NCBI GenBank assembly: GCA_028826165.1
Contig: JAPDFW010000067.1
Location: forward strand, 186,001 to 250,000
Source of the DNA: Anaeramoeba ignava BMAN
Taxonomy: Eukaryota > Protista > Anaeramoebae
Direction: 5' to 3'
Length of the DNA stretch: 64,000 nucleotides
Under the pieces are notes generated by a model, which worked only from the letters and a program-made list of their open reading frames with translations, did not search any database and was not told the DNA's origin. Shown here one piece after another: positions 1 through 26,328 of the stretch. Positions within the stretch are counted from its first letter, which is position 1. The number at the start of each line of letters is the position of its first letter. Made by a program: the position numbers and the translations under genes.

Positions 1-1490
1 AAAATTAAATTAATTTCAAAATTAAATTCATTTCAATTCAAAATTAAATTCAATTCATTTCAATTCAAAATTAAATTAAATTCAATTCATTTCAAAATTA
101 AATTAATTTCAAAATTAAATTAAATTCAATTAAATTCAAAATTAAATTAAATTCATTTCAAAATTCAATTCATTTCAAAATTAAATTAAATTAATTTCAA
201 AATTAAATTAAATTAAATTAAATTCAATTCAAAATTAAATTCAAAATTAAATTAAATTCAATTAAATTCAATATTAAATTAAATTCATTTCAAAATTAAA
301 TTAAATTAAATTCATTTCAAAATTAAATTAAATTCAAAATTAAATTAAATTCATTTCAAAATTAAATTCAAAATTAAATTAAATTAAATTCATTTCAAAA
401 TTAAATTCAAAATTAAATTAAATTAAATTCAATTCAAAATTCATTTCAATTCAAAATTCAATTAAATTCAATTCATTTCAATTCAAAATTAAATTAAATT
501 CAATTCATTTCAATTCAAAATTAAATTAAATTAATTTCAAAATTAAATTAAATTAAATTAAATTAAATTCAAAATTAAATTAAATTCAATTAAATTCAAT
601 ATTAAATTAAATTCATTTCAAAATTCATTTCAATTCAAAATTAAATTAAATTTATTTCAAAATTAAATTCATTTCAAAATTAAATTCATTTCAAAATTCA
701 TTTCAAAATTAAATTAAATTAAATTCAAAATTCAATTCAAAATTAAATTAAATTCATTTCAAAATTCAATTAAATTAAATTAAATTAAATTAAATTAAAT
801 TAAATTCATTTCAAAATTAAATTAAATTCAATTCAAAATTAAATTAAATTAAATTAAATTAAATTAAATTAAATTCAAAATTAAATTCAAAATTAAATTA
901 AATTCAAAATTCAATATTAAATTCATTTCAAAATTAAATTAAATTAAATTCAATTAAATTCAATTCAAAATTAAATTAAATTCAAAATTCAATATTAAAT
1001 TCAAAATTAAATTCAAAATTAAATTAAATTCATTTCAAAATTAAATTCATTTCAAAATTAAATTAAATTAAATTAAATTCAAAATTAAATTAAATTAAAT
1101 TCATTTCAAAATTAAATTAAATTAAATTCATTTCAAAATTCAATTCAAAATTAAATTAAATTCATTTCAAAATTAAATTAAATTAAATTCATTTCAAAAT
1201 TAAATTAAATTAAATTCATTTCAAAATTAAATTAAATTAAATTCATTTCAAAATTCATTTCAATTCAAAATCAAATTAAATTCATTTCAAAATTAAATTC
1301 AAAATTAAATTAAATTCAATTAAATTCAATATTAAATTAAATTCATTTCAAAATTAAATTCAAAATTAAATTAAATTCAAAATTAAATTAAATTCATTTC
1401 AAAATTAAATTAAATTCAAAATTAAATTCATTTCAAAATTAAATTAAATTAAATTAAATTCAATTCAAAATTAAATTTTTATAAATTTAG
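1..1490 (+). repeat. 3' part of a large intron of the NRPS-like gene, filled with mixed pentamer repeats (AAATT/CAATT/CATTT/CAAAATT)
   Basis: Repeat tract with essentially no G ends in ATAAATTTAG (AG at 1489-1490). An open frame follows immediately and is continuous with ORF 1705..8490. The donor lies upstream of the window. Confidence 0.75.
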
Positions 1491-4400
1491 CCTTCAAATA
1501 ACATCCTATTGGAAAAAACAATCACAAAACATAACACCAACTAACTTTTTCGGTAACGAAAAAAAAGATTTCAGTAAAAACACTTCAAGAAAAAGACAAA
1601 TCTATTCCACTTTCCCATTCCGGTCAGATTTCATTGAAAACAAAGCAAAGGAATTTAGCGATCAAGCAACAATCGATTTCACACTTGCATCAATAGCACT
1701 TTGCGTGACACAATTCACACAATCACGAAACATATCACTAGCAGTTTGTTGTTACAACTCGTTCATCTACACAGATCAAGACTTCCATCTTTTGGAATTC
1801 AATCCGTATCTCCTGAATATACAAACAACAGAATCGCGCACTTTCAACGATTTGGTCACGAATATCGCACAGAAAAGAAAAGAAATCCAACCGTTCCAAG
1901 AATTCCCGTTTTCGGAATTTTTTTCAAGTGAAGAAATGCTTCAATCCAAATCAAAAGATGAAAAAAAAACGTTTCCTTGCAAAATTTTAGTTGTTTTTGA
2001 CCACGGATTTGTAACGGAAAAGATGAAGAACTTCGAGCTTATTCTGCGACATCACGATCCAAAACTTCAGTTAAAAACAAATACTCAATTCAATTTATCG
2101 TTGAATATTGACAGTAAATCAGAAACAAGCGCCCAAAAAAGAAAAACAAATCCGTTTTATTCCAAGCAGTATTTTGTGCAGGATTACTTCGACTTTGTCG
2201 TTAGTTTTGGATTTGAAGAGGAGACTAACAAGAAGATTGTCCCGAATTGGTTGTTTTTTGACCGAATTTTTTACAATAGCGAAAAAATCAATCAATTATT
2301 TGTGTGCAATTTCTACGAGCATTTCGCAAGAATCGCAAAGACGAGCAACAAGCAAACAGCGGTGGGAAGTGTGCCTGAAATAACGGGGAAAGAAGAGGCT
2401 GTTGTAGTGAATGAATGGAACAATATATCGGGGAAAAATTTCACAAAAACGAAAAAACTAGCATCACTGGGAATTCCGATGATTTTCCGCAAAATCACGA
2501 AAAAAAGACAAGGAGCAATAGCAATCCGCTCGAAAAACGCGAAGGTGACATACGAACAGCTTGAATACCGCTCGGATCTGTTTGCAGTTTATTTGCAAAA
2601 GGAGCTGAAAATACGATCAAACACAGTGATCGGGGTTTCGATGAAAAATTCAGTCGAAACAATAGTGGCGCTACTTGGGATAATCAAGGCAGGGTGCAGC
2701 TATATCGCGCTGAGACCGGAGTTCTCGGCAAACCTTTTGGCACGGATCATCCGGAAACTGGATGTGAAACATGTGCTGAGCGGTGCGGCATCAGCTGGTG
2801 TTTTTGAGAAACTAAAAAAAGAATCAAAAACGGAAATAAATACACATTTAATCACTGTGAATGAGTTGGAGTCTATTCTCAAACAGGTGCAGAGATCGGA
2901 AGTTCGCAAGACAAAATTCAAAGTAAAGGGCAATCAAGTGGCGATTGTTTTCCCTCGGTTTTCTGACGACGGCAAGCTCCAGTTCTTCACATTAACTCAC
3001 GCAAACATCATCACAAAATTCATCACAATTCAATCCTCAATTAATTTATGCAACGTAGTCGGGTTCTGCTCACCGATATATCACGAACAGTCACTGATCG
3101 AGTTGTGGGGCACGCTGATCAACGGAGGTAGAATTGTTGTCTTCTACATGAAAAACTTGCTCAGTTCCAAGTTTGAGGCGTTTATCCGACAATCAGGCAC
3201 AAAAGTGCTTACTCTCTCAACTAGTGTTTTCCAACAAATTGTTTCTCGAGACTCAACATTTATTCGCCAGCAACAACAGCCATCTATTGAGCACACAGAC
3301 CCGCAAACACAGAAAAGCACGTGGCCGTTCCATTTGTTTGATCTCCTGATGATCTACGGTGAACCCATTGCATACCGCAAATTTTTCGAGTTTGTGAAAA
3401 CGGAGAAGATGAGCCTTCCGAAGAAACTCGTCTATTGCTTCGGTACTCCGCAAACAGCATCCATTTTCGCACTTCTCCCCGTATGGGACGAGTTCCAATG
3501 GACAGGCAGGAAGGAGGTTGTTTCTGAAAACGAAGACGATGTCAAAGACGAAAAACAACTCCCGGTTTTCATCCCGAATATCCACTACTGGATCCACAAA
3601 TACAAAAGCAGCACAGGGTTTCTCCCAATAGGCACGCCGTGTAGCGACTGCGAGGTCTACGTTCTCAACAGCAAAACCCTCAAACCAGTGCCTTTTGGCG
3701 TCAGTGGCGAAGTTTATGTGTCTTGTCTTTCAATCGGCACTTTGTTGGATTACAACGGAAATGAAGACGAAAAAACCGACAAATTTCGCGCTCAATTTGA
3801 CAGAATTTTTGTCCCTAATCCATTCGAGAAATCCGATTCTGAGAACAAACTGCTTTTCAACACAGGAATTCACGGATGCATTCTTTCTAGCGGGAAACTG
3901 GAATTTTACGAGTATCAACAACCTCAGGAAATCCGTCAGGTGTTTGTCAACAGCGAGTTTGTGAATGTGAAGGCAATTGAAGAGGTTATCAAAAAACACA
4001 GTAAAGTCAAACAGGCAGTGGTTCTCGTTCGCGATGCAGAAAACTCGGAACGAAAACGCATTGTCGCATATCTGGTTTGCGAAGAGACAATCCCTCCTTC
4101 GTTCCAGGAGCTTTCGCAGTTCATCCAGAACAGACTGCCACAAAGTCACGTTCCTGTTTCTTATGTTTTTGTTGAAAAAACCCAATTTGGTTCTGATAAG
4201 ACAGAAATTTCGCGCGCAATGCTTCTTGCCAAATACGCACATGCGCAAGAAAAAACAAGCTCTACAACAGACACAACCGTCACAAGAAACGCAAATCAAT
4301 CTGCGCAGTTCAAACCCCCGAGTAATCCTACTGAGGAGTTTCTTTGCAAAACGTTTGCGTCTGTTCTTAATTACGAACAAGTCGGTGCGTCGGATAATTT

Positions 4401-7400
4401 TTTCGCACTCGGAGGCGATTCCATATCCGCAACAAGAATCGTCGCAAAGGCTCTTCATGCGGGATTGCGGTTCTCAACAGAAGATCTTTTCCTCAATCCA
4501 GTTGTGTCTGATCTAGCAGTCTTTATCGAAAAACAAAAGGAAAAGTTCCAGCAAAACATAGATTTCTCTGCTCATCACAGAAGATTCTTTGAGCAGCAGC
4601 TCCCAGAGCCGAGCCAATCAGAGCGTCTTGTTTTCATCAATCTCGACCACTCAGTGAATCTGAAGTATCTTAAAAAGGCTTTTTTGATGATCCTTGCCCA
4701 GCACGAAAATCTCCGATTGGTTTTCCCAGAAAATCATCCTCATTTACAATCTTTGGAGGATCTCACTCATAAAAAGAGCAAAAGACATCATAAAGACTCC
4801 TCTGTGTTTTCGGTGCTGAAACTGCCAACGAGCGAGATGGAGCCCAAACAGATTGGCAAACAATGCGCGAAGATCCAACAATCTCTCAGAATAGCAAAAG
4901 GTCCGTTGATAAAATTTGTTGTTTTTGTCGAGGACCAAACGCAGGACACAGAAGCAGAGAAGCTCAACAACGAGGATGCGTTCTCGATTTTCCATGTTGA
5001 GCAGAAACAATCCCAACAGGAAAAGACCGAGAAAGACTTTTCCAAAGACCATTTCTTGGCAATGATTTTGATCCACAATTTACTTGTCGACACCGAGTCA
5101 ATCAAAAAGCTCGTCTCCCAATTGCAAACAAACTACGAAACAGTCAGAAGCTCCTTTGAGAATTTTGTCGAGATCCCAGCACCATCTCCAGTGACTGAGT
5201 ACTACCACTATCTCAACTCCCAAAAAAAGCTAGAAATCACAAAAAAATCATACACTTTCTGGCAGACAATTTCAAACAGAAAGAAAAACTACGTCAAACC
5301 AGTCCCAAAAAACATATCCGAGGCAGGAACAAATTTTTACGAGGATCTGACCAACATCCGCGTCAGTTTCGACGACAAAACCTCGCATCTCATTTACTCA
5401 GAAATCGCTCGGAAAGACGAATACCAGATGGCCGACATCCTCGTGACTGGGATCGGTCTCGCTTTGACTGATTGGACATCCAGCATATACAACTTCATCC
5501 ATCTCATCGAGCCTCCCAATCCCCATTCGCAGAAAACACACGGCTTTATCGCACCGGTAGAAAACACGATCCCAGTTTTGATCGCCTTTACACAACCAAA
5601 TGTCGTAAAAGACAATATAAAGTCATTTGAACTGGTCAAAAAGCAATTGAGAGAATTCCGTTTGCATGTCCAACAGCTCAACAAGATCCTGTATTACAAC
5701 GATGCGCAGAACGCAAACGAAAGCGAGGATCTCGACTATAAAATGGAGTTTGAAAAACAAACTCAAAATGAAAAGCAAATTCAATCACCCTCGCAACAAC
5801 GCAAATCGTCCCAATCCGAGAAGCAAAAGGAGATTCTGACTTCGGGACTTGGCGCCGAGATACCAGACGCTAATCTCAATCTGTTCAAATCAGACGAAGA
5901 CGATGATGACGAGCAAACGGGAATGAGACAAGATGCTCCAGATTCTTCCGAGGACGAAGACATTTCCTTCTTGAAAGTCCCACAATCCAAACAGGAAGAA
6001 CTCAAAATCCTCTCGCAAGCAGAAATCGCAATACGCTTTATCGGAAACGTTGATTTCAACTCCTTCTCTCTCGGAAAAGTTTCCATTGATCCACTAACAG
6101 AACCCAAAAAATCACGAAAACTCAACTCCCCAAAAGCGCAAAACCCGTATTTGATTGAAATTATCAGCTTTGTTCAGCAGGGCTGCGTCTCTTTCAAGCT
6201 CATTTACAACAAGAAGCTTTTCAAAGCGGAAACCATCAAATCGCTTGCGAGAAACATGATGAAAATCTTGATCAAACTCTCGAAGGATATCCGCAAAGAA
6301 AACCAACACAAAAGCAAAAGCAAAAGCAAAAAAACAGAAAACGAGACGCAGGAAGAAAACGATATCTTTGCAAACTTCCCACTCGCAAAAAGTCTTACCG
6401 TAAGCGTCATCCGGGAGCTTTTTGAAGAGGACTCTCTTATCGAAGAAATTCTTACCCCATCTCAATTCCATCAGGAAACAATCCGTTTTTTCTTAAGAAA
6501 AGATCAGCTGTCAAAAAGTCACATTGCAAGTCAACTTCTTCTTCGGTTCACAGCATCCGAATTTGACGAGAACAAACTGCGCCAAGCATGCCAAATCTTT
6601 GTCGACCAGCATCCTGCGATGCGATCCTATTTTGTGCGCAACCAATCCAAGCAATCCAATATTCTTCATATAATCCGCAAAAAGGCAGAGATACCCTTTA
6701 GGTTTATGAAGTTTGAACAAATGGACGATACCTTCAAACAGGAAATTGCGCAGGAACGGCAGCACCCGTTCAAATTTTCCCATGCGCCGTTGATCCGCTT
6801 CTCTCTCTTCTCAATTGAAAAAGATTCCCTTTATTTACTTTCAATCGCATTTGAATCGTTTCTTCTTGATTTCTGGTCAATTCCTTTAATGATACAGGAA
6901 ATATTCTCCAAATACTGCGAACTCGCCTCAAATTCCACCGACGACAAAAAGGATCTTCTTCCCACTCTTCCCCATCCACAACAGATATCTCTCCACCAAA
7001 ATCTCCACAAAGAATACATTTCTTATGAACACAATCTTTCTTTGTCGAAATCAAGAAGATTCTACAGATCGTTTATGAAGGATTTCGACATCAACACCCC
7101 GATAATCCCGACCAAGGAAGGCGTCTCCAATTTCCAGCAATTACTCCTCAATCAAGAAAACATTGGCGAATTGAAAAGCCGCTCAAAAAGCCCGAACCTG
7201 TCTAACATGCAGCACAGTCGAAGTAATGAAAATGTCCCCATTTCACCCAAATTGGATCGTTCTCAAATTCCTGCCAAAAAAATAACACCGTCCGATATTG
7301 ATATCAAGGGACAGTTCTTTGTCAACACTGCAGAATTCAAGGAAATCAACGCGCATGTTGGAGCGGATTCTCTCACAAAAATCATCTCTTCTTTGCGAAC

Positions 7401-8490
7401 AAACAACCTTACTTTGAATTCATTTATACACTTTATTTGGGCGCTTACTCTCAACTTTGTGAATCCTAAAACCCCAACCTATTTCGGTACAACAATCTCA
7501 GGAAGACCAGCAGAGCTTGGCGAAGTTGCAGACAAAATTGTCGCCATGATGAGTAGAGTCCTCCCTATCAAATTCGAGCTCTACAAGGACAAGACTATCT
7601 TGGCTCATATTGCGCAAATTCAATCCCTTCTTCTCAAATCATCTCTCAACCCTCATGTTACAGACTCACGAATCCGCAAATGGTGCAAATTCCCCAAAAA
7701 AACTTATCTCTACAACGGCGGTGTTGTTGTTTTTGAGGGATATCCCAAAGACAGAATATTCCCCCTGCGTGATCTTGGTGATGAAAATTACGAGGTTGTT
7801 CTTGATCTTTCCAAATTGAATCCCTCCTTAGACATCATGTTCTCCAATCTCTCGGTCATGGAATCCTTAAGACATCCTCTTTCTCTTATCGTCTTCCCGT
7901 CGGGACAAGACTTGCTTGTGCGCATTGTGTACAACCAGGCACTTTTTGAAGAAAGAACAATTAATCGCTTGATTGATTTATTCACTCAATTTTTCAAATT
8001 GATTTCTTCATCATTCACAAACTTAGATAAGCCTATTAAGGATCTTCTCAGTAAATCAGAATCTTCCGATTTCATCCAGAAATCCCAAGACAAATCCCTC
8101 AAAAAAGATAAATCATCTCCCCAAATCGATCAATCCCCATCTCCATTGTCAAAAGAATCAGACAATTTGGATCAAGACCACATTTTCAAACAGGGATATT
8201 TAACAAAAAAAGGTGGTCATGGTTTCACTGCAAACTGGAGAAAGCGTTGGTTCATTCTTAAAAACGACCAGTGCTTTTACTACTATAAGTCCCAAGGCAC
8301 TGCACAACCTTCTGGTTTGATTCCAATGAAAGGTGCTTCCATTGAACCTCTTCCAAATCACAAAAAGAAAAATTGTTTCCAAATCAAAACAGAATACAGA
8401 AGTTATCCAATTTATGCTGAATCAAAACAAATTATGGATTCTTGGATTGATGAGATTACTAAATATTTAGCAAGAATTAACAAGAATTAA
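1491..8490 (+). CDS. NRPS-derived multidomain protein, last exon (5'-partial): C (second half) - A (degenerate) - T/PCP - E (degenerate) - C (DCL-like, degenerate) - PH
   Basis: Frame is open from 1492 (LQITSYWKKQ...TLASIALCVTQFTQSRNISLAV...TFNDLVTNIAQKRKEIQPFQEFPFSEF, C-domain-like). A-domain motifs: VTYEQL, IIKAGCSYIAL, LPIGTP...VYVLN...PVPFGVSGEVYV. T domain DNFFALGGDSI with Ser at 4420. E-like QHENLRLVF, HNLLVDT, DILVTGIGLALTDW, NFPLA. C-like QHPAMRSYF, APLIRFSL, LLDFWS, YFGTTISGRP. PH domain KQGYLTKKGG..NWRKRWFIL..AESKQIMDSWI at ~8180-8475. Confidence 0.9.
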
Positions 8491-8624: not shown

Positions 8625-10973
8625 TTAATTTTGATTTTGTGGAAGAATTTCAAGTTGTTTTGTTTTTCTTGAATATTTTGAACTAAATTTTTTTAAACTA
8701 TTTGTTAAAATTTTTCCAAAATATTTTTTTTGGGAATTCTTTTGATTTTGGAATTGATCAAATGGTGAATCTTCTTGATTTTTTGAATTGGAAATCATTT
8801 TGTTTTTGCTTTTAAAAATTTGATTATTTTCTTGATTTTTCTTTTTTGATTTTTGTAAAAAATGCTTAATTTTTTTGATTGAAAATATAAGTATGAAAAG
8901 AACCAAAATTGCTAAACATAATAAAAAGAATTTTTGCAATTTTCCCTCATAAATTCGGCAATATATCTTTGTTAATGAAGAATGCTTCAATTTGAATTCA
9001 TTTTCGTTTTCATTCTTTTTGTAAATTTCAATTTTGTTGTTATTGTTCAAATTCTTTTCAATCAACCTCTTTGTGTTAATAAAAGAAAGATTATAAGAAT
9101 TTGTCAAATTGGAAAGACCAGAATAAATTTCATCAATTGAAATGATGTTATTTGTGACAAAATCGCAATTTAACCACGAAGTTTTATTCTTAATTATATT
9201 ATCAATTGCGCTTGAAACTTGAGGCATTAATTGATGTGATTCCGATAAATCAACACACGCTCCATTTTCGAATATGAATCCTTCATCACAAACAACTTTT
9301 CCATTCTTACAAATCGCATTGTCAATGCATTTCACACAACTATCCAATTTTTCTTGGTTGTTGATATCTGAATCGCAATATGGTAATTGCTTGAAAAAAA
9401 ATATGTTCATGAGAAAATATCCCAAAAACGCTGTAATTGAAATTAAAAAGAAACAATAAACCCAAAACAAAATTTCTATCATAATCTTTTTTCTTTCTTG
9501 TGTTGCTGTTTCTTTTTCAAGATTTCTTTCTGTTTTTTGTTTTGGTGATGTAGGAAATAATGTTCTTATTGGTGTTTTTTCTGTTTGATTAATAATTGTT
9601 TCTTGGTTTTCCACATATTTATCGATTAAATTGAATGAATTTTGATTTTGATTCTCATTTCCTATTAAATTGAATGAATTTTGATTTTGATTTTCATTTC
9701 CTATTAAATTGAATGAATTTTGATTTTGATTTTGATTTCCTATTAAATTGAATGAATTTTGATTTTGATTTTCATTTTCATTTCTAATTAAATTGAATGA
9801 ATTTTGATTTTGATTTTCATTTCCATTTTTTAGTGAATCTAATTGGGGTATTTGTGGGTAAATTGACCTGAAATAATTCCTTGGTTTTTCTGATTTCTTT
9901 AATTCATGTGAATTTTGAAGAAATTTATCAAAAGTTGAGGAATCATTTGGCTTTTTTTTCTCTTCAGAATAAATTTTCTGATGAGTTTCTTGTTTTTTTG
10001 GTTTGAAAAGAAAATCTAAATTATCTTTTGAGGGTGTTAATTTTGTTTTTGAAGGTGATTTTTTCTTTTTGTTTGATTTATGTTTTTTTTGATCTTCATT
10101 AATAGGATGTTCCAATGGAATTCGTTTTTTATCTCTTGCATTTTTTGAAATGGAATTATCATTAGATCGATTTGGTTCTTTTCTAGTATATGAAGAAGTA
10201 GTTTCTATTAAATTATTATTTTCATTTTCATTTTCAATTTGATTTTCATTTTCAATTTGATTTTCATTTTCAATTTGATTTTGATTTTGATTTTGATTTT
10301 GATTTTCAATTTGATTTTCATTTTCAATTTCATTTTGATTTTCAATTTGATTTTCATTTTCAATTTGATTTTCATTTTCAATTTGATTTTCAATTTGATT
10401 TTCAATTTGATTTTCATTTTCAATTTCAATTTGATTTTCATTTTCATTTTGATTTTCATTTTCATTTTGATTTTCATTTTGATTTTCATTTTCAATTTCA
10501 ATTTGATTTTCAATTTCTTCTTGTTTTTTTGGTTTTTTTTTTGCTGATGAAAGCTGATAAATAAGTTTTGAAGAACTATTTTGGAATACATTCTTTAAAG
10601 ATAACCGTTTGTTATCCTTTTCTTTTGTCAAAAGATTTTTATTTAATTTTTTTTTTGATTTTAATTTTTTTACATTTTCTTTTTCTTTTTCATTTTCATT
10701 TTCTTTTTTTGAAATATTTTCTTCATATTTTGTTGGACTTTCATAACTAATTTGTGTTGGACTTTGATAAAAATCATTTTTTATTTTTGAATCATTTATT
10801 ATTTTGGGATTTTTTGCTTTTTGTTCTTTATCTATTTCTTCAAATTTTGTTGGACTTTCATAAGTTGATTCATTTTGTTCTTGAAAAGATTCTTTAATAT
10901 CTTCTTGGTTTTCTTTGGTTTTGTTTTTTCTTTTGCCTCTTTTCTTGTGATGTTTTTTTATTGTTGTAACTGA

Positions 10974-11005
<32 letters not shown>

Positions 11006-11138
11006 TTTCTTTTTTTTTGAGACGTTGATAAATTCTTACATAATCTTGTTTTTTTTTTCTTCCTGTTGATATTTTTCCACCCATTTTTTCAATTTTGGAA
11101 ATTAATTGAGGAATAGTAAATCTGCTTGGATCACTCAT
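8625..11138 (-). CDS. Src1/Heh1/MAN1-like inner nuclear membrane protein (N-terminal HeH/LEM-like helices, long disordered linker, two TM segments around a Cys-rich luminal region)
   Basis: N-terminus DPSRFTIPQLISKIEKMG..RKKKQDYVRIY resembles HeH. TM1 at ~9390-9480. Luminal YCDS..CVKCIDNAICKNGKVVCDEGF..GAC matches the Man1-Src1 pattern. TM2 at ~8880-8935. Confidence 0.7.
9625..9830 (-). repeat. Coding 39-bp tandem repeat, ~5 copies (NENQNQNSFNLIG)
   Basis: Repeated TTCCTATTAAATTGAATGAATTTTGATTTTGATTTTCAT-like units on the + strand. Confidence 0.85.
10215..10515 (-). repeat. Coding hexamer repeat (ENENQIENQ)n
   Basis: TTTTCA/TTTTGA/TTTCAA hexamers. They also generate the spurious MKIK/IFIF ORFs in other frames. 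Confidence 0.85.
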
Positions 11139-13936: not shown

Positions 13937-16900
13937 ATGGCTTTCTTTAAAGGAATTTTTAAAAAAACAAAACAAACAAAAACAACAAAAACAACAAAAA
14001 ATTTTGATGTTTTTTCAAATGATTTTCCAATTGAAAGTAGTGGATTTTTAAATCATTCTCCATCAGGAGAAATAATAGAAGATTTATGGCAAACAAGAAA
14101 ACAAATAACAGACAATGTAATTTTTCAAAAAAGAAAAATTTCTCTTTAATAAATTTTAATTATTATTTTTTTTTGAAAAATTTTTAAAATTGGTTAATTT
14201 ATTTGTTTTTAAAGGATGCTTTAACTGAATGGTACATGAAACTTGGTACAACTTTTATTGAATTATATAATAATTGGGAACCTAATTATCAAGAAGATGA
14301 ATTTATAAAGCAAATTACACAAAAAACAAAAGAAGAAATGCAGAAGGAAGATCTTCAAAAAAATGAAAATAAACCAAAAAAAGGAAAAAGATTTAAATGG
14401 AAAAGAAAAGGAAAAAAAGATCAAAATAAACAAAATGAAGACGAAATAGATCCTGAAGTCTTAGAAAAAATTGTTATTCAAGAAGCAATCAATAAAGATT
14501 ATGCTCAACCTACAGAATTTATAATTCGATTTCTTCGTGTTTTAATTACTTTTAAAACTGATTTAATGAAAGGTAATTTTTAATTTTTTCAATTTATAAT
14601 TTTTCCAATTTAAAATTTTTTCAATTTAAAATTTTTTCATTAAGAAATTGAAAAAAGAATTTCAAATCAACAAGCAGAACTTAATATTTTAACAGCTGTT
14701 TCACTTGAAGTTATATCTATTTTATCTCGTTCAAAATTTAATAGAAATCGTTTAATCAATTATGGTTTATTTCAAGAAGTTGTTGAAATTGCAACTTTAA
14801 CAAATACTTTATTTTCTTTTTTTCTAAATAAGGTTTTAATCAATTTTTAATCAACAAAAATTTTTTGTGTTCATTTCCTTGTTTTTTCTTTCTTCAGGAT
14901 TTACAATCAAAACAAAAAGAAAAAGAAAAAGAAGATAAAATTATCACTTTAAATCTCTTTCAAACACAAAATTTATTATTGATTGAATTTCTAATTACAA
15001 AGATTTTAGATATAATTTCACATTTTTCAATGATTAAACCAACATATTTAAATGAATCATTTTTCTCAAATTTTTCCCAATCAGATAAATCTGATCTTGA
15101 ATGGATAATTAAATCAGGATTAATTGATTCACTTGTTAGTAAGTATTTAATTTTATTATTTTAAAAATTTTTTTTAAATATTTAATATATTTTTTTTAAG
15201 GCTGCCTTGAAAAAATGAGGAAATTAAATGAATTCGTTCTTTTTAATCAAATTCAATACAATATCCAAATCAATTTAATCAACACAATGCTTGTAATATC
15301 AAGTTCAGGTCTTCTTTCCAATGAAACATTTTACAGAATCACAGATATATTAATCGGAATGTTATTACGTCCAAATTTATCACTTCCAGGATTAAAAATT
15401 CATTCATTCGAAGAATCACAAACAAATAACCAAAATAACTCACAAGAAAAATCAGATAAACCAATAATAACAACTGATGTTCTTTACTATTTTTGGATCC
15501 CAAATTATCACCAAGAACACAATCCAGATTTATCTGGAAACGATCTTTTATCAACAGAACAAACTCAAAATATAGAATTTCAAATCAGAATAGTTATTCT
15601 TCAATTATTTAGGGAATTAATTGCTGATAATGCAAATGCAGAAGTTCAAGTCGGAAAAAATGTTAAGTTTTCTCATTTATGTGATTTTATTCTTTGGGTT
15701 GCTCAAAATTTTCCTTCTGATATTGTTGCCAGTTTTATTCAAGAGAATAATAATTTAATTGAAACAAAACTAACAGAAATTTCAAAAAAGAAAAAAGAGC
15801 AATTATTGGACCAAATCAAAAGACAATCAAAAGAAACTACTCCTATTCAATTTAATTTTAGTTCAAATATTGATTTCCGTTTGAATGAAAAAAATATTTA
15901 TGATCCTGAAGGTAAAACAAATAAATTTTTCATCCAAAAAATAAATCCCATTTTAAAATATCTTCTTTTTAAAAAGAATTCAAAAATAATTTACCAAGAG
16001 AAGTTCTTATAACCAAAAATTTTGACATTTCTCAATGCAATCGAATTACAAAACCTGTTCGTAAAGTTCAAAATGTTGACAATCCTTATATTCATAGATT
16101 ATTCCAAATTTTAGGAGATATTTGTCTTGAAAGTACAAATAATTCACAAGCAATTCGCCAATTAAAATCAAACCAAGAAAATATTTCAAATACAAATACA
16201 AATACAAATAAAAGCAAAAACAAAAACAAAAATAAAAATAAAAATAAAAATGAAAATGAAAATGAGGAAAAGGATGAAGTTTCACAATCATGGAAAAATA
16301 TTCAAACTTGGACTTCTACATCTGAAATTAATATGAGAATTAAAGATAGGATTTTATTTGTTTGCTTGGATTTATTTCATTATAATTTTCATAAATCATT
16401 CACAAATACAAACGCAAGAAATTTTGTACTTTCAATTTCTCCTCAACTTCAAGTAAATAACAAAAGCAAAAATGAAAAGATTAAAAAAAATAATTTTTGT
16501 TTTTAAATAATTTTGTTTTTTTTAGTATGAAGTTCTAATGCTATTCGCAAATAGTTTGGATCAGGAAAGTTTAGATCTTTTAGGATCAAGAAATTTATGG
16601 AAAATATTCTTTTCAAATTTTTTCTATTATGAATTAAATAATGATTTTATTGGACCTCCAAAATCAGAAGAATTACTTTTCCAAATATCTGATTATTTAT
16701 TCAAATTCATTACATATGTTGGTTCAAATGAAAAAATAACAAATATTGAGGAATGCAAAGCTTTAGTTAATTTAATCAAAGAAAATTGGTTTAATTTGAA
16801 TGTTATCACGCAAGCATTAGATTCATTGATAGTCATTTTAAAAAATGTTCCCAAAATGACAATATCTTCACTTTATCAAATTAAAGCAATCAAAATATTC

Positions 16901-19900
16901 ACCGATTTATCAAAGGATTTATTTGAATTTCAAACATTCCAAAATTGTTTAAATGAAGAACAAAAGAAGAAATATATTAATGAATGTGCTACTACTAAAG
17001 AATGGATATTTGAATCAGAAACCAAAAAATATTCGCTTGATTTGGTTTATGAGATTCGGCTCAAATTATTTGAGGTTATTGATATATTCTTCATTGATTT
17101 TGAAATGAGATCAAAATTTATTGAAGAAAATGACCAGAATTTAGCTTTAATTAAGCTATTATTGTGCCTACTTCTTGAGCCTCAAATCCAAAAATACTCA
17201 TTGTATCAATTGGCTAGATTTATGCTTGCTGCACCTGAAGAAACACCATCCTTAATTTGGTTTGAATTGTTCACATCATTTGTAGAATTTTTAATGTCTA
17301 TTCATCAAAAACAAGAAAGAATAATGTCTCAAAAATCACAAAGTCATAAATTCATTTTATTGATAAAATCCATTCTTTTTGCAACTTCTTCTTGTATTTT
17401 TCAACATCAAAACCCTTTGCAACAACTTTTTGTATCTGCGGGTTCTTTTAAAATGCTTGTCACATTTTTGAGTAGTTCTCTGTTTGGGAATAATTTAATT
17501 GTGGATGTTTTGAAAATGTTTATTGAATTGTTTCGAGGAAATAGAGAAAACATGCTTGAATTCAAATATGATGTTGGATACAAAAACTTGGAAAATTTGA
17601 TATATAATGCTGAGCTCCAAAAACCATCAATTTCAACTTATAATTTATTATTGAATATGGTTGTTAACAATAATTATTCTCCACCCATTTTTGAAAATGA
17701 AAATGATTTGGATAACGCGAATCAAAACGAGTATTATCATGATGATTATTTTAACGGGATGTTCCCATATATTGATTATAATTATTTTGATAAGGAAAAG
17801 AATTTTTTGATCCAAAATCCAGAAGTTATAATGATAATGTTTGAAATGTTTTCAAAAGGAAAAAGAAAAGAAGATTTGCAGATATTTTATAATTTGTTGG
17901 AAACATTTTCTGAAATTTGTGAAATGTCAATTCATAATGCATCTTGTTGTTGTGAAGTTGGACTTGTTTCTTTTCTTGCAAATTTGATACCGAATCTTCA
18001 ATCATATGAAGAATATTTCGAAAAAGAAAAAGAAGATGAAGATGAAGAGAAAAAAAAATTATTGCAAATAGTTCTTGAACAAACAATAAGATTACTTGGT
18101 GTTATTGGATCACATAGTATGACTGTCAAAGAATTGAAAACTTTGTTTATTTTGCTGAAAAGTTTGAAAGGAGACTTTCGTCCGCCTTATTCTCATTTAT
18201 TATTAGAAGCAATGCAAAAAATGCTTGGTTCAAAAAGTATTGACAAGAAAATACAACCAAAAGTATTTTTTGATTTCAATGGAAGATCATCATGTCTTGA
18301 AATACCACAACTTGATAAATGGCCATCATCAAAAGGATACTCGTTTTCAACATGGTTGAGAGTGGAAAACTTTGAAGATCCTTTAAGCAAACCAAATTAT
18401 GAACCAAGAATATTGAGTTTTTTAAATGAAAGTGGTCATGGTATTGAAATATACTTCAAATACAGGAAACAAGCAAATAATTCAGATCCAAAATCCAAAT
18501 CAAGCACAAATACAAACATCGAAAACGAAATTATACCAAATGTAAATCAGACAAAAACAAAATCCAGGAAAAAATATAAAACAATAAGCCTCAATAACTT
18601 GAAGTTGGATTTACAAGAGATGAATGAAAATAGTGAAGATCAAAATTTGGATTTGTCTCGGTATTCTGAACCCATTGCAGATTTAGTTTTGAAAGTTGTT
18701 TTGCCAAATAAAGTTGATTATTGCACTTTTCCCTTTTATATATCATTAAGAAAATGGTGTTTTTTCGCAATTACCCATTCATCACCAAGATGGACTTCAT
18801 CAGGAGAAGTTAAATTTTATATTGATGGTTTTTTTGTTGGCAAATATCCATTAGAATATCCAAATATTGACTTTCCATTGACAAAAAACAGGATTGGATC
18901 AAATTTCATCGTAAAGCAAAAAGATAATTCAAATACTCAAGGAAACCATTTTTTTGGGCAAATGGGAACAATTTATTTCTTTACAGATGCTCTTCATCAA
19001 ACACAAATTACAGGAATATATCAATTAGGACCTGATTATATGTCTTCTTTTGAAGATGCATCATTCAATTTAGCTTCAAACACACCAAATAGCCCAAGAA
19101 TAATAAGAAAAACGATGAGTTATTCAGGAAGTCCTCTTACATCTCCATATACTATCAACGCATTAGATGGATCTTTAGCAGAAAAAATATTTTTCAATTT
19201 CAATAGTAAAGCTTGCGATCTTCATTATTGTATTGACCAAAGTCCTGTTTCTGTAATTCAAAAGGCAAAAATTGTTGGAATGTTTAAGTATGTTTCAAGA
19301 GATTTGGAAGATATTATTCATTGTTTAGGAGGAATCAAAATATTATTCCCGCTTTTAGCTCAACTTGATCAACCAGCTGCTTCTCCTCAAAATTTAAAAT
19401 TTTTAAATATGGATAATTTTCCAAAAGAAAAAGAAAATGAAAATGAACAAAATCAAACAAATTTAATGGATTTTAATTCTTTAAAGCAAATGATTGATTA
19501 TTCAATCGATCCAAATATGTCAGGACAAATATTACAGTTAATCTTCCAAATGTTAGTTCAAAATCTATCTAATCAAGAAGATATGAAACGTTCTTATGGA
19601 TTTCAAATAATAAGCCATCTTCTACAAACATTTTCACCAAAACATATCACAATAAATGTTGTTAAATCACTGAAAACATTTATTATGTCAATTCAAAACC
19701 AAGATTTATTAACAGATTTAATTAACAATTTTGTCTTGGATTTCGATAATTGGATATATAGTAGTTTTGAAGTTCAAATCAAATTGATTAAACAAGTATT
19801 TTCGAAGTTATTAGTCCCAAATCCTTTAAATAATTTCCATGGTAAAATCTCAACTCAAGATATTATGAATATTCTTCGTTTATACTATTGGATTACAGCA

Positions 19901-22900
19901 GAAACTTATTCAAAAGGAATTGAGAATAGATTCCATTCAGTAACAAAAGAACTGATTGGAAAAAGACCTTCTCTTGAAGAATCAAAACAAATCCGCAAAT
20001 TGTTAGTTCAATGTATCACTAATTTGATTTTGCATTCACAAAATTCACAAGAAATTTCATCAGTCATTATGTATTCGTTTGCAATGATTGATATTAACCA
20101 TAGTGATGAGATTAAAGATATTCTTTTGGTTATTCATGATTTAATTCATACAGATGCTAAATGTAAGGAATGGTCAAATAATTATAATAAAGATTCTGAG
20201 AATCAAAATCAAAACCAAAAAAAGCAAATTGAAAAAGAAACAGAAGCTCAGAAATTGAAACTTCTTGATTCTCTCAATTCTTTCAAGTTTATGGATACTT
20301 TTATTATATTTCTCAATTCTGATGATGATGATCTTCGTGCATTATCATTGCATATTTTATATGATTTAGGGAATTACTCAGATTTATATCCGAAGAAGAA
20401 ATGGAAAAGTAGATTAATCTCAAAAAAAGGATATGAAACAATACATAACATTTTGATAAGTCATTCGTTTACAAAAAAAATATGTAATGTTTTGTTCTCA
20501 ATATTAGTTTCATCGCAAGTTGAAATTACTGATCAAGAAAAAAAGCATTACTATCTTATAAAAAGATCAAGTGTTTTAGAAACAATTTTTTATTTAATCC
20601 AGAATAACGATCCAAAAGAATTGACAGTCCATGCAACCAATACAATTATTAATATATTAAAAGGAAATGATACAAACAAAGAAATTATGATCAAGCAATT
20701 TGGATGGCAGCAATGGTTGATTGATATATATCTTTCCAAAATGAATAAACAGCAAACTGCTGAAGACGAACAAAATATTGAAGATGCGCAAAAATTTCAG
20801 TTGTTCAAAAAGCAAATTATTGAAGGGATTTTCACAATATTTCGTATCATCCATATTTATAGTATTTTTAGTGATAAAAACGGCACTCAATGCTTTGAGC
20901 AAACTACACATTTTGTTCAAAATACTTCGTGGGAAACGGAAAATATGGAAATTAATTTTTTGCGTAGACTTTATTCAGATATCATTTCTGAGATTAAACA
21001 ATTGATAAGCGAAAAGAAAGGAATTAAAAATGTTGTAACAAATTCAGCAATTTTTGCTGATAATTTCATTAGTTTGTCAGATTTGTTTTCCAAGTTTGTT
21101 AGCTTTACATTTAAAGAGATTCCAAAAACAACATCTGAAAATGCACCGATACCAACCACAGTATCATCAATCAAAGATGGAGAGAAAAAACTTTTACGAA
21201 AAGAATCAATAGCTCTGAACCAGAAATTCAAAAACAAAAAAACAATTAGAAGAACATTAGGGCCAGATTATTTCCGTATTTTAAATGAGTCTCGAAAATC
21301 ATCGAATCAAGAAAAAAAACCAAATGAAATGCAAGAGATTGACGAATTATTAACGATTCATAAGAATTATGGTGATTTTATTCTAACAAGTCAATTCAGG
21401 ATGAAGGGAATGGATTGGGAAGATTTGGATATTATTAAAGATTTTATCAATTTGTTTTCTGAAATTGGATTGGTTTACTTAACAAAAAGCAAGTCTGTGA
21501 TTTCTGAAAAGGAAAAATTGAAGTTTATTATCCAAAATATCATTTCTATAATTTTAAACGGTATCAAAAATTTTGAGATTGAGCAAAGTGATTGGTTTTT
21601 TGAAAAATTATACGATATCTTCGGCACAATCCAAAAAATATCATCTCTTAAACCTATTAGAAATGGGATTGCATCGATCATACTTTCATACTTATTTTCA
21701 GCACTTGAAGACTCAAAAAATCAAACAAAAAAACAAGGGATTAAAAGAAAAGACTCAATGAGTCAAATTCCATTACAAAATTTTGGAGGAAATGAACTTG
21801 AGATTTCTACTTTAGAACTTTTTGATTTTTCGCAAAAATCACCTTTATCGAGTGTATCAGAAAAAAAGCCATTTGAACAAATATTATTAGAACATATCCA
21901 AAAAATATTCAAGAAATCATATTCGTTTCTTGCAAGCACTGTTCGAGATAAATCAGGCATTCTTCTTCTTCCAAATAACAAATCAAACTCATATATTTTC
22001 CATCAAACAAAAGAGCAACTTATCGCAAGATTTAGCAGTCCTGATTGGAAATTTGCGATTGAAGATTTTTTCCACAAGGAAGTTGATAAATTTCGGATTG
22101 AAAAAGAAATTGAATGCAAAATTTATTCACAAGAAATTATAACTTCAGTTCAAGAATTGCAAATAAATATCAACAAGGAATTAACAGACAAAATGCAATC
22201 TATGAAAAAAACAACCAACGAATTGTTGAATAAATGGTTTCCATCAAAAGTGCGAGAGGAAAACCAGAGAATTGCGAAATTGGTTGAATTAAAAACAAAG
22301 AAGAAGGCAATATCCGCAAGAAAATGGACTTGGGCACTTAGAAGTGTAAGTAATGAAAGAGGACCTTGGGGATCTCGAGATTCCTCAATTCCGATTCATT
22401 GGAAACTTGACAGAACAGAAGATGATCATCATCGACGCAAAAAACTGAAACAGAACTATCATTTCGATAACCACTTTGATGCCTCAATAAGAAGAGATGA
22501 AAGTTCACGAGAAGCAGCAGATAAAATCATTATCGAAACATACGACAAAATGCAGCTTGAGAAAATGACAAATCAAGCGAAGAAATCACTTTCTGGAATT
22601 AAAATGATTGCAAATATTGATGGAGAAGATAATGCAGAAGATGAATTTGATGACAGCACAGTGAATTACAACAAAGATGAAATATCAACAATGGAATCCA
22701 ATGAAAACACACCCACAAATATAAATGTTAAGAAAGTTATATATCGAACAGAATGCTCTTTAGTTGCTCCGCTCACAATCATACCCGGAATTCTTGAAAT
22801 ATCAACAAAATCACTTGATTTTTATCCAAATAAAGAGGCTGCAATTGAAGCCAATAAGGATTCTACACTTGATAAATACAATATTCTTAATAGAAGTGCT

Positions 22901-25900
22901 GATACTATTTTTAAAGACCGTTCTTGGCAATTGAAAGAAATTCGAAAAGTTTATAAAAGATCATACAGACTAAGACAATCCGGATTGGAAATATTTTTAA
23001 CCAACAAGAAAAATTTCTTCCTTCATTTTCCAAAACAGAATAGAAATGTTGTTTTCCGAAAAATTATCAATTTGAAATTGCCTAATATTTTCAAAATTGA
23101 TTCAGGAAGACCTTCAGAATGGCTTCGAAAAACACATCTTACTAAAAAATGGCAGAAGAGACAAATATCCAATTTTGATTATTTAATGGAATTGAATGTT
23201 ATTGCTGGAAGAACATATAATGATGTTTCTCAGTATCCTGTATTTCCTTGGATAATCTCAGATTATGATTCAGAAGATTTGGATTTGAATGATGATAAAA
23301 CATTTAGAGATCTTTCAAAGCCTATTGGAGCGTTAAATGAAAAGAGGCTTCAAGAATTTATTGATAGATATGAAAGTTTCGAAGATCCAGATAATGTTAT
23401 TCCACCATTTTATTATGGTTCACATTATTCAAGCACTGGTAAATATTTTAATTTAATTTTAATTTCAAATTTAATTTTCAAAATGAATTTTAATTTCAAA
23501 ATGAATTTTAATTTCAAATTTAATTATAATTTCAAAATGAATTTTAATTTCAAAATGAATTTTAAATTTAAATTATAAAAGCAATTATTTTGTACTATTT
23601 AATCAGAATGGAACCATTTACAACTTTGTCAATTAAATTACAAGGAGGAAAATTCGATCATGCAGACCGTTTATTTAGTTCGATTGGACAAACATGGAAA
23701 AATTGTTTAACAAATTCTTCAGATGTTAAAGAATTGATTCCTGAATTTTATTATTTCCCAGAATTCCTTCAAAATTTTAATCAATTTGATTTGGGAAAAA
23801 CACAAAATGAATCAATAATAGGAGATATAATTCTTCCCAAATGGGCAAAAAATAGTGAAGATTTTATAAGAATAAACAGAAGAGCTTTAGAAAGTGAATA
23901 TGTTTCACAACATTTACACGAATGGATTGATTTGATTTTTGGATACAAACAAAAGGGAGAAGAAGCAAAAAAGGCATATAATATTTTCTATTATTTAACT
24001 TATGAAAATTCAGTTAATATTGATTTAATTACTGATGAAAGAGAAAGAAAAGCTATTGAAGAGCAAACTGAGTTTTTTGGACAAACACCAAGTCAAATAT
24101 TCACAAAACCACATCCAAAAAGATATTCACTTGCAGAATCAAATGCAATTCCTTTATATTGGGATTTTTCGAAATATGCAAAGATTTATACAAATTTTTT
24201 GGATTTAACAGATTCAGGAATTTTATTTGTTCATTTTGACAATCGTTTAACAATATTTGATAAGAAAAGATATCTTTCTGCATTCAAATTAATAGCAACA
24301 TCAACATCAACATCATCACCAAACAAATCAAATTCTTTATCTGGACAAACAGGAAATGAGAGTTTTGAAATTGGGAAGGAAGAAAGCAAACATCAACAAC
24401 ATCAACGTTCTGTCAAAAGCCGGAAATCATTTTACAAAATCAAGTCACGTTTATCTGTTAAATATAAAGCAAAACCTATTATATTTGATCAAGAAATTAA
24501 TAAAGATTTTCAAGATTTTAGTAAAATTTCAAATATTGATAAAAATCAAAATGAAAATCAAATTGAAAATAAAAATCAAAATCAAAATCAAAATCAAATT
24601 GAAAATCAAATTAAAAATCAAATTAAAAATGAAAATCAAAATCAAAATCAAAATCAAAATCAAAATCAAAATCAAAATGAAAATGAAAATGAAAATCAAA
24701 ATCAAAATCAAATTAAAAATCAAATTGAAATTGAAAATCAAAATCAAAATAAAAATCAAATTGAAAATCAAAATCAAATTGAAAATCAAAATGAAAATGA
24801 AAATCAAATTGAAAATGAAAATGAAAATCAAAATCAAAATCAAAATAAATTTGAAAATAAAAATCAAAATGAAAATGAAAATCAAAATCAAAATAAAAAT
24901 CAAAATAAAAATAAAAATAAATTTGAAAATGAAAATGAAAATAAAAATGAAATTAAAAATCAAAATCAAATTGAAATTCAAAATCAAAATCAAAATCAAA
25001 ATCAAAATCAAAATGAAAATCAAATTCAAAATCAAATTCAAAATCAAAATCAAAATCAAATTCAAAATCAAATTCAAAATCAAAATCAAAATCAAAATCA
25101 AAATCAAAATCAAATTGAAAATCAAAATGAAAATCAAAATCAAAATCAAAATCAAAATGAAAATGAAAATCAAAATCAAAATCAAAATCAAAATAAAAAT
25201 AAAAATAAAAATGAAAATGAAAATCAAAATCAAAATAAAAATCAAAATAAAAATCAAAATAAAAATCAAAATAATGAAAATGAAAATAAAAATGAAAATA
25301 AAAATGAAAATGAAAATGAAAATGAAAATGAAAATGAAAATGAAAATGAAAATGATACAGATACAGAAAATTTAAGTGAATCAGGAATCGAAAAAAATAA
25401 GCCAAAAGAAATGCAAAAAAGTCAAATTCAACCACAAGAAACAATAACAGAAATGACAAAACAAATAGAAAATGGAGAAGGACTTGTTTTTGAGGTTGAA
25501 TCATTGATGAAAGGAATCAAAAAAACAGTTGGAGTATCATTTGCATTTGGAATATCGAAGATGAGCAATTGTTTTGCAGTTTTAGAAAATGAAAAAATAT
25601 TTTTCAGTTGTGGATTTTGGGACAACAGCTTCAAATTAACAAATTTAGACAACTCCAAATTAATACAATCAATAACACAACATAAAGATATTGTAACATG
25701 TTTAGCAATTGATCATGAAATATTAGTAACAGGCTCAAGAGATACAACAGTAATGATTTGGAAAATTGATTTGAGAGAAGGAAAAGTAAAAGAAAAACCA
25801 AAGAATATTTTATATGGACATGATGATGAAGTAACAAGTGTGGATTTGAATCAAGAACTTGATATTGTTGTAAGTGGAGCCAAAGACGGAACTTGTATTA

Positions 25901-26328
25901 TTCATTCTTTAAGAAATGCTCAATATGTTCGATCAATTTTCATCAATGAGAATAATGAAAATAATAAAAATGACAGCAATACTCAATCAATAATATCAAT
26001 GCTTAAAATTTCAAATGAAGGAAATATTCTTGTTTATTCTGATAATGATTTATCTATTCGATTGTTTAGTATTAATGGAAAACTTCTTAAAATTATTGAT
26101 ACTTCTCAACATATTAATTCTTGGGATTTAACAAGAAATGACCAATATTTAATCACAGGAAGTGAACAAGGAGTTATACAAGTTCGTCAATTATGGGATT
26201 TGAAAAATATTTATAATTTTGAGTTTAATCATCCTATTTTATTTGTTTGTTTTACTTCTGATGAAAAACATATTCTTGCTGGTTTTGATAATGGAACCTT
26301 AATGATTGGTTCTTTATCTTTTAATTGA
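13937..26328 (+). CDS. BEACH-domain protein, neurobeachin/LRBA/NBEAL type (helical repeats, ConA-like domain, PH-BEACH, BEACH, WD40); 8 exons
   Basis: Phase-consistent exons: 13937-14116, 14215-14572, 14645-14832, 14898-15138, 15201-15911, 15977-16452, 16526-23438, 23582-26328. Motifs: [68 protein letters not shown]|[36 protein letters not shown], and WD repeats ([22 protein letters not shown]). Confidence 0.95.
24541..25352 (+). repeat. In-frame hexamer microsatellite encoding ~270 aa of (NQ/NE/NK)n within the BEACH protein
   Basis: AATCAA/AATGAA/AATAAA units. The frame stays open into the WD40 region. Confidence 0.9.

Follow-up and report, generated by a model that had tools for sequence, protein, structure and literature searches.

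Bacterial nonribosomal peptide synthetases (NRPSs) with an epimerisation domain, such as the adenylation-carrier-epimerisation (A-T-E) proteins GrsA and TycA, McyA/McyB and LgrA, are the closest described relatives of a gene found in the protist Anaeramoeba ignava BMAN. This gene lies at positions 1491-8490 (+ strand) of a 64,000-nt stretch, hereafter the window, which covers positions 186,001 to 250,000 of contig JAPDFW010000067.1 (C68; assembly GCA_028826165.1). The bacterial enzymes provide the best sequence and structure matches to its 2334-aa product and share the same folds in the same order, i.e. condensation (C), A, T, E and a following C domain. The C68 protein differs from them in that it lacks the catalytic core motifs except for the T core, retains only the C-terminal lobe of the first C domain and is devoid of a release domain. 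Additionally, it is encoded by a spliced nuclear gene and carries a eukaryotic pleckstrin homology (PH) domain as well as disordered acidic inserts. Its layout is a C-domain remnant followed by A'-T-E'-C'-PH, where a prime after a domain letter marks the loss of the catalytic motif.

Three further systems are informative for comparison. In fungal siderophore synthetases, a single domain is dead, the product is still made and loading of the orphan T domains falls to other A domains. The likeness to the C68 protein is an adenylation fold kept in an NRPS frame after core-motif loss, whereas in the C68 protein every catalytic domain appears to be dead. Degenerate A domains within active, ferrichrome-type NRPSs have been described for these fungi (Bushley et al., 2008; PMC2644324). 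Secondly, the PH domains of cytohesin/GRP1 and SKAP55 share a basic beta1-beta2 motif with the C68 PH domain, which sits on an NRPS-derived body and not on a Sec7 or adaptor module. Thirdly, A. ignava itself encodes a bacterial-type, antiSMASH-listed C-A-T-C-A-... NRPS on contigs C47 and C99, which needs the same phosphopantetheinyl transferase (PPTase) and differs in its intact motifs, its native codon usage (GC content at third codon positions, GC3, of 0.147) and the absence of a PH domain. The genome paper reports 'several non-ribosomal peptide synthases' in the genomes it covers, whose products might influence symbiosome colonisation, and its Supplementary Data 7 lists an antiSMASH region 27.1 of type 'NRPS' at 167,936-214,490 (PMC11550330). 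This region corresponds to the annotated span of the gene, C68:187,936-194,490 (window 1936-8490), extended by 20 kb on either side. The analyses described here make it very probable that the gene is expressed, maintained by selection and catalytically dead; most likely, its product has been repurposed for a non-enzymatic role, and the catalogue entry as a natural-product synthetase does not apply. Pseudoenzymes and degenerate NRPS domains are already known, and the dead NRPS-PH module is undescribed in the searchable literature: queries for an NRPS-pleckstrin homology fusion, or for a pseudoenzyme adenylation domain or pseudo-NRPS of this kind, found no report.

Domain architecture and lost catalytic motifs

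Profile searches with Pfam recover Condensation, AMP-binding, AMP-binding_C, PP-binding, Condensation and a C-terminal PH domain, in this order. HMMER alignments to solved NRPS structures (LgrA, the GrsA/TycA E domains and the McyB C domain) and a column table derived from an A-T alignment were used to place the individual motifs. The features of the gene, given in window coordinates, are as follows.

1-1490, + strand: intron 1, an AT-only satellite of AAATT/CATTTC-type units that begins ~170 nt before the window start; acceptor AG at 1489-1490
1491-8490, + strand: single large coding exon, from the third base of codon 2 to codon 2334 plus the stop of transcriptome protein P0270, whose residues 3-2334 equal the translation of 1492-8487
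1492-2385, + strand: remnant of the first condensation domain, C-terminal lobe only; weak Pfam Condensation stretches, starting past the HHxxxDG position
2488-4230, + strand: A', adenylation fold without A3, A4, A5, A7, A8 and A10 (Pfam PF00501 and PF13193, column table, AlphaFold/Foldseek)
2938-3000, + strand: A3 (P-loop) equivalent VAIVFPRFSDDGKLQFFTLTH (alignment, column table)
3433-3462, + strand: A5 equivalent YCFGTPQTAS, with FGTPQ for YGPTE (alignment, column table)
3856-3870, + strand: A7 equivalent FNTGI, YRTGD in the consensus, with the ribose-binding Asp replaced by Ile (column table; placed on YRTGD of LgrA)
4189-4215, + strand: A10 equivalent GSDKTEISR, with Glu in the column of the catalytic Lys (column table)
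4333-4521, + strand: T (carrier) domain, core near consensus (Pfam PF00550, 38.9 bits)
4573-6360, + strand: E', epimerisation-type domain (with the E domains of GrsA and TycA as top solved matches; NCBIfam TIGR01720, the signature of the epimerisation-domain region)
6463-7860, + strand: C', condensation domain (Pfam PF00668; alignment to the McyB C domain)
8185-8463, + strand: PH domain with the basic beta1-beta2 signature K...W-R-K-R-W-F (Pfam PF00169)

An initial annotation, made from the letters of the window, had read the A3, A5, A7, A8, A10, E and C motifs as eroded and the T core as near-consensus with its serine at 4420. Each of these strings is present at its place, and alignments of the kind which that annotation had proposed put them onto the canonical motifs of LgrA, GrsA, TycA and McyB. 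Within the A3 equivalent, the sequence reads VFPRFSDDGKLQF where the consensus has YTSGSTGxPKG, and the A8 equivalent (3907-3984) is eroded to the point of being almost entirely lost. The A-T alignment comprises 50 sequences, of which 46 intact domains (45 bacterial and the intact one of A. ignava) served as reference. The C68 protein retains 42 of the 94 columns that are conserved in at least 85% of this reference set, and among these it keeps one Gly as the only residue of the P-loop, with the substitutions T491R, S492F, G493S, T495D, P498L, K499Q and G500F. In addition, the Phe-Asp of A4 is changed to His-Glu and the Asn, Tyr, Thr and Glu of A5 are all lost. In the E' domain, the HHxxxDG (E2) equivalent is HNLLVDT at 5074-5094, as IHNLLVDTES aligns on IHHLVVDGIS of GrsA/TycA, and the EGHGRE motif is lost at 5497-5523, where IHLIEPPNP aligns on IHLEGHGRE of the same E domains; an acidic, Ser-rich insert is located inside this domain. 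The C' motif is ESFLLDF at 6853-6873 (AFESFLLDFWS on HHHIILDGWS of the McyB C domain). The T domain stands apart, with its core DNFFALGGDSIS at 4393-4428, an unbroken F-F-x-x-G-G-x-S, the retained GGDSI and Ser979 encoded at 4420-4422.

Compared with a functional NRPS, the C68 protein thus shows the folds and the order C-A-T-E-C (by Pfam and NCBIfam, and by AlphaFold/Foldseek for A'-T) and a carrier serine of the GG(H/D)S(L/I) type; A3, A5, A7 and the A10 Lys are missing, as are HHxxxDG in the C and E domains and EGHGRE in the E domain, and the first C domain is devoid of that region altogether. The residues required for adenylation, epimerisation and condensation are therefore absent from the protein. 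Since the P-loop, the A10 Lys and the A7 Asp are all gone, adenylation and with it self-loading would be lost, and the motif replacements strongly suggest that epimerisation and condensation by the canonical mechanism are lost as well. A structure model of A'-T, also proposed by the initial annotation, was predicted by AlphaFold with a predicted local distance difference test score (pLDDT) of 83 and a predicted template-modelling score (pTM) of 0.80, and its top Foldseek matches are NRPS A-PCP structures (PCP, peptidyl carrier protein). This prediction points weakly to a kept NRPS A-PCP-like fold, because the underlying alignment is dominated by intact domains.

The initial annotation was incomplete in that it omitted the C-terminal PH domain, which is the strongest clue to the present role of the protein. 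The Pfam match reaches 69.2 bits against a cut-off of 25.1, and among solved structures the domain is most closely related to the PH domains from cytohesin-2/3 (GRP1) and SKAP55. These domains bind 3-phosphoinositides or phosphatidylinositol 4,5-bisphosphate (PI(4,5)P2) via the basic beta1-beta2 motif. The corresponding K-Xn-(K/R)-X-R motif is present in the C68 PH domain, where LTKKGG...WRKRWF aligns on the cytohesin motif, which suggests that it binds phosphoinositides.

Transcript, reading frame and purifying selection

The window is AT-rich, with a GC content of 6-30% in most 2-kb bins and of ~42% in the region from 2 to 8 kb. A + strand frame remains open over 7 kb, as the initial annotation had noted, and runs from 1453 to 8490, whereas the other two forward frames across the same stretch contain 97 and 98 stops and the longest open frame among shuffled coding sequences (CDS) is 220 codons. 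The sole public sequencing run that contains the stretch (X1) is kept as contigs, and its kind is not on record. X1 contigs match window 1491-1958 and 1961-7399 and beyond. One of them departs from the genome precisely at 1491, right behind the acceptor AG, where its 5' continuation reads ...TTTAACATGGA; the junction is ...AACATGGA fused to window 1491. Across this junction, ATG GA|C yields the N-terminus Met-Asp-Leu-Gln, and an in-frame TAA is located 21 nt 5' of the ATG. P0270, a protein from the EukProt transcriptome with a complete open reading frame (ORF) of 2334 aa, consists of Met-Asp followed by the exact translation of 1492-8487. The X1 junction together with this identity shows that the gene is transcribed and spliced, and that it encodes a complete 2334-aa ORF which begins within the first C domain.

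The position of this start bears on the suggestion that an active first C domain and further modules might lie upstream, outside the window. In the alignment to the intact C99 NRPS, the SYW of the C68 protein is found ~70 residues beyond HHIIIDG, i.e. the ORF opens with Met-Asp at 1491, after the HHxxxDG position and behind the TAA, and the C101 and C59 members of the family described below start at the same point (MDTIFW... and MNSSVNFW..., respectively). No upstream modules are therefore part of this gene, and the suggestion falls. In agreement, the 16 kb read on the 5' side hold a kinase gene and a minus-strand gene besides the 1.7-kb satellite, and no NRPS modules.

The NCBI model P0001 (2184 aa) takes the first ATG within the exon, at window 1936, as its start; the assembly holds no ATG between the frame opening at 1453 and this position, and the 150 residues that the model omits are conserved with the paralogs. 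Exon 1 was sought on contig C68 as assembled with 30-, 25-, 14-, 13- and 11-mers of the transcript 5' end, and none of them matched. The best approximate match, C68:185,769-185,793, is modestly above background and lies in the expected place, between the divergent gene and the satellite. It ends ...TTTTAACAT and the genome then reads TAAATTAAC, whereas the transcript exon ends ...TTTAAC ATG GA. Either the low-complexity DNA was misassembled here, or the start codon and splice donor differ between alleles. Repeats are a feature of the region: the satellite of intron 1 extends over ~1.7 kb (C68:185,830-187,490, with window 1-1490) and is nearly G-free, the 5' untranslated region of the transcript is a 10-bp repeat (TTAACTTTCT)n, and in the paralog on contig C115, (TAAAACAATT)n occupies at least 650 bp immediately 5' of the large exon (L016:1-660). 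Contamination was ruled out, as the gene is located on a 470-kb contig with eukaryotic genes on both sides, is spliced and encodes a PH domain.

Several observations address selection on the gene. The assembly and X1 differ at eight sites over 5.4 kb, all of which (8/8) are third-position and synonymous (8/8). As random changes would be synonymous in 21% of cases overall and in 34% for transitions, the neutral probability of this outcome is ~4e-6 to 7e-5. For the youngest pair of paralogs, C114 and C101 (71% identical), the Nei-Gojobori method gives a nonsynonymous divergence (dN) of 0.19 and a synonymous divergence (dS) of 1.31, from which an omega (dN/dS) of ~0.15 follows that is approximate because dS (1.3) is near saturation. 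By domain, dN/dS of this pair is 0.20 for A', 0.04 for T, 0.07 for E', 0.13 for C' and 0.27 for PH. The comparison of C68 with C115 is unusable for dN/dS, since the proportion of synonymous differences (pS 0.76) is saturated. The C68 gene is under purifying selection. The initial annotation would have given up its reading for a gene that is unexpressed and has a dN/dS near 1; instead, a transcript exists and omega is far lower in the C114/C101 pair. The combination that defines a pseudoenzyme, namely loss of the catalytic residues together with expression and purifying selection, is found in this gene.

A six-gene NRPS-PH family in A. ignava

Condensation matches occur on eight contigs of the A. 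ignava genome. Six of these loci (C68, C115, C114, C101, C59 and C8) have a PH tail, and all six share the architecture (C remnant)-A'-T-E'-C'-PH. The remaining two contigs, C47 and C99, carry the intact NRPS in near-identical, low-GC (24.5%) copies (C47:4314-9821 and C99:2280-8330) with every motif present, which looks like the only catalytically competent NRPS of the genome. Canonical A3, A5, A7 and full HHxxxDG motifs are found in none of the six PH paralogs, either by regular expression or by alignment. The four members in the alignment share many replacements, for example Ser to Phe in A3, Arg to Tyr in A8, and Pro to Ser and Arg to Leu in the A2 region. In a tree of A-T sequences that takes in these four PH members, with C59 and C8 left out, they form one clade (Shimodaira-Hasegawa-like approximate likelihood ratio test, SH-aLRT, 100), and the intact A. 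ignava A domain groups among bacterial sequences, apart from the PH family. The stem of the PH clade (1.13) is the longest internal branch, with a full stem of ~1.25 as the midpoint root falls on it, and the end branches of the PH members are ordinary (0.58 for the C68 gene, equal to the median of the tree). The shared replacements, the long stem and the ordinary end branches argue that the motifs were lost once, before duplication, and that normal constrained evolution followed. The four members in the tree thus point to common descent of the PH family.

The closest paralog of the C68 gene is C115. The best non-self match of the C68 protein is the EukProt A. ignava transcript P0002, which is 99% identical to C115 and documents its expression. 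The C101 paralog is deposited at NCBI as KAJ5070019.1 under the name 'nonribosomal peptide synthetase [Anaeramoeba ignava]'. Among the six paralogs, mean pairwise identity is 46% for T and 49% for PH and 24-31% for the other domains, and the W-x-K-R-W-F of the PH domain is invariant. Codon usage varies within the family, with a GC3 of 0.456 for the C68 CDS, 0.448 for C115, 0.35 for C101, 0.33 for C114, 0.32 for C59 and 0.23 for C8, compared to 0.135-0.216 in the genes neighbouring C68. The paralogs have diverged deeply, which speaks against a recent transfer, and expression-linked codon bias is a possible source of the elevated values.

Searches for the same architecture outside A. ignava were performed at three levels. 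A word search with the entire protein, and one with its PH part, found this architecture in A. ignava proteins only. An exhaustive profile search returned three representatives, all from A. ignava; its library missed C8 and C59, which are in the profile, so that the blank elsewhere is weak. In a metagenome scan, 49 loci with the PH domain were detected, none of which had an adjoining A', E' or C'. The architecture was thus seen in A. ignava only, in libraries that are incomplete for A. ignava itself and do not include the A. flamelloides and A. pumila proteomes.

Possible roles and neighbouring genes

The best overall explanation, held with moderate confidence, is a domesticated NRPS stretch that was joined to a PH domain and is now present as six nuclear genes. 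A bacterial-type stretch (C-A-T-E plus the next C) would have lost its catalytic residues in an ancestor and gained the C-terminal PH domain, and duplication would then have produced the six genes. The C68 protein would make peptide no longer; its PH domain may recruit the 260-kDa body to phosphoinositide-containing membranes, where the still-folded A'-T-E'-C' body might have a scaffold or adaptor function that involves no catalysis. The T domain would be mainly a conserved docking element, and in the C68 paralog the phosphopantetheine arm may persist. For the specific role as a PH-recruited membrane scaffold, we place the chances slightly under even.

Several points weigh against this interpretation. 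Loss of motifs is graded within the family: C114 and C101 retain the A10 NGK(M/I)DR and FRTGE, C114 also has HH in its E motif, and a residual or unorthodox activity of some paralogs is possible from these motifs. The Arg after beta3 which contacts the inositol phosphate in GRP1 is a Ser in the C68 PH domain. The selection evidence comes from sequences of a single species, A. ignava, and includes the C114/C101 estimate with its near-saturated dS. Retention of the T serine in four of six members and strong T conservation would also suit an arm-dependent function. Membrane binding, partners and inactivity are all deduced from sequence.

The last of these functions is the first alternative to be considered. 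In a carrier-dependent role, the T domain would be phosphopantetheinylated by the sole PPTase and loaded in trans, or would hold a thiol-bound ligand, with the dead E' and C' tunnels as binding chambers; the arm would in that case be central to what the protein does. Besides the retained Ser and the entire DNFFALGGDSI core, the dN/dS of T, the lowest of all domains, and its high conservation across the family speak for this role. The genome check proposed in the initial annotation, for a PPTase and intact A domains, detected both: a single PF01648 match lies at C113:7462-7737 in a 266-codon open frame, so that modification of the carrier is possible, and the intact C47/C99 NRPS requires that PPTase. 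However, the carrier serine, present in C68, C114, C101 and C59, is replaced by Glu in C115 (GGNEI) and by His in C8 (GGNHL), yet the T domains are conserved in these paralogs and C115 is expressed. The phosphopantetheine arm cannot therefore be the function of the whole family, and conservation of T as a fold fits a docking role. A partner A domain is also not linked to the locus, whose neighbours are ordinary eukaryotic genes. Taken together, a carrier-dependent role is unlikely. The earlier proposal that selection keeps the folds and the carrier arm, and not peptide synthesis, stands in part: expression, purifying selection and the loss of the catalytic residues support it, whereas the arm is lost in two of the six paralogs.

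Alternatively, the protein could be a ligand sensor, in which binding of an amino acid or another small molecule in the non-enzymatic A' pocket would trigger a conformational switch of the adenylation subdomain (A-sub) and T, and the PH domain would place the sensor on a membrane. The confidently predicted A fold is consistent with such a pocket, as is the position of Asp235 (A4), which is Glu in five of the six paralogs within a strongly conserved S-L-I-E-L-W-G-T; this conservation may, however, be structural only, and the dN/dS of A' is the second-highest, behind that of PH. We regard a sensor as rather improbable. A similarly long shot is a whole NRPS module domesticated as a non-enzymatic machine: the six-member family could reuse the large A-sub/T movements between the dead A', E' and C' docking sites for a switch, gated by a ligand or lipid, on phosphoinositide membranes, perhaps those of the phagosome or symbiosome. 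The symbiosome of A. ignava houses sulfate-reducing bacteria.

An active, highly divergent NRPS whose peptide acts on the symbionts, as the genome paper suggests for the antiSMASH 'NRPS' regions, has the canonical domain order and the T serine in its favour, along with the listing of region 27.1 and the speculation on NRPS products (PMC11550330). Against this, replacements affect the P-loop, A10 Lys, A7 Asp, A4 Asp and A5 Glu alike, the second His is missing from both the E and C motifs, the ORF begins in the middle of a C domain and a release domain is absent, so that this option is highly improbable. A decaying lateral-transfer relic, i.e. a pseudogene still open by chance, would account for the eroded catalytic motifs, the foreign-looking GC3 and the assembled sequence without a start codon beside the exon, but it is refuted, with a negligible chance left to it, by 2332 open codons against at most 220 in shuffles, the exclusively synonymous polymorphisms, the full-length transcript and six diverged paralogs which conserve the same architecture and evolve at low omega in the young pair.

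With the repurposed non-enzyme as the preferred interpretation, the locus has consequences for how such genes are counted. Protist NRPS genes are usually taken as evidence of secondary metabolism. As six of the eight Condensation-bearing NRPS loci of A. ignava are dead modules with a PH tail, the inference of the genome paper on symbiont-shaping products needs revising, and the peptide-making capacity of the organism looks, from its motifs, limited to the C47/C99 pair. Pseudoenzymes that consist of an entire multidomain assembly-line module, and not of a single dead domain, and that have been rewired by a eukaryotic targeting domain are rare; the family would be one such case and thereby provide a natural test of NRPS folds and carrier-domain docking apart from chemistry.

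Two further genes of the window were noted. An 837-codon ORF on the minus strand (8625-11138), without a Pfam match, converges on the 3' end of the NRPS-like gene. Further downstream, a neurobeachin/LRBA-like BEACH-domain gene (16538-26328, + strand) is split over two open frames, 16538-23578 and 23590-26328, which are separated by 11 nt and out of phase with each other. Its Pfam BEACH domain is divided between the two at profile position ~100, for which a frameshift, a misassembly or a very short intron would account.

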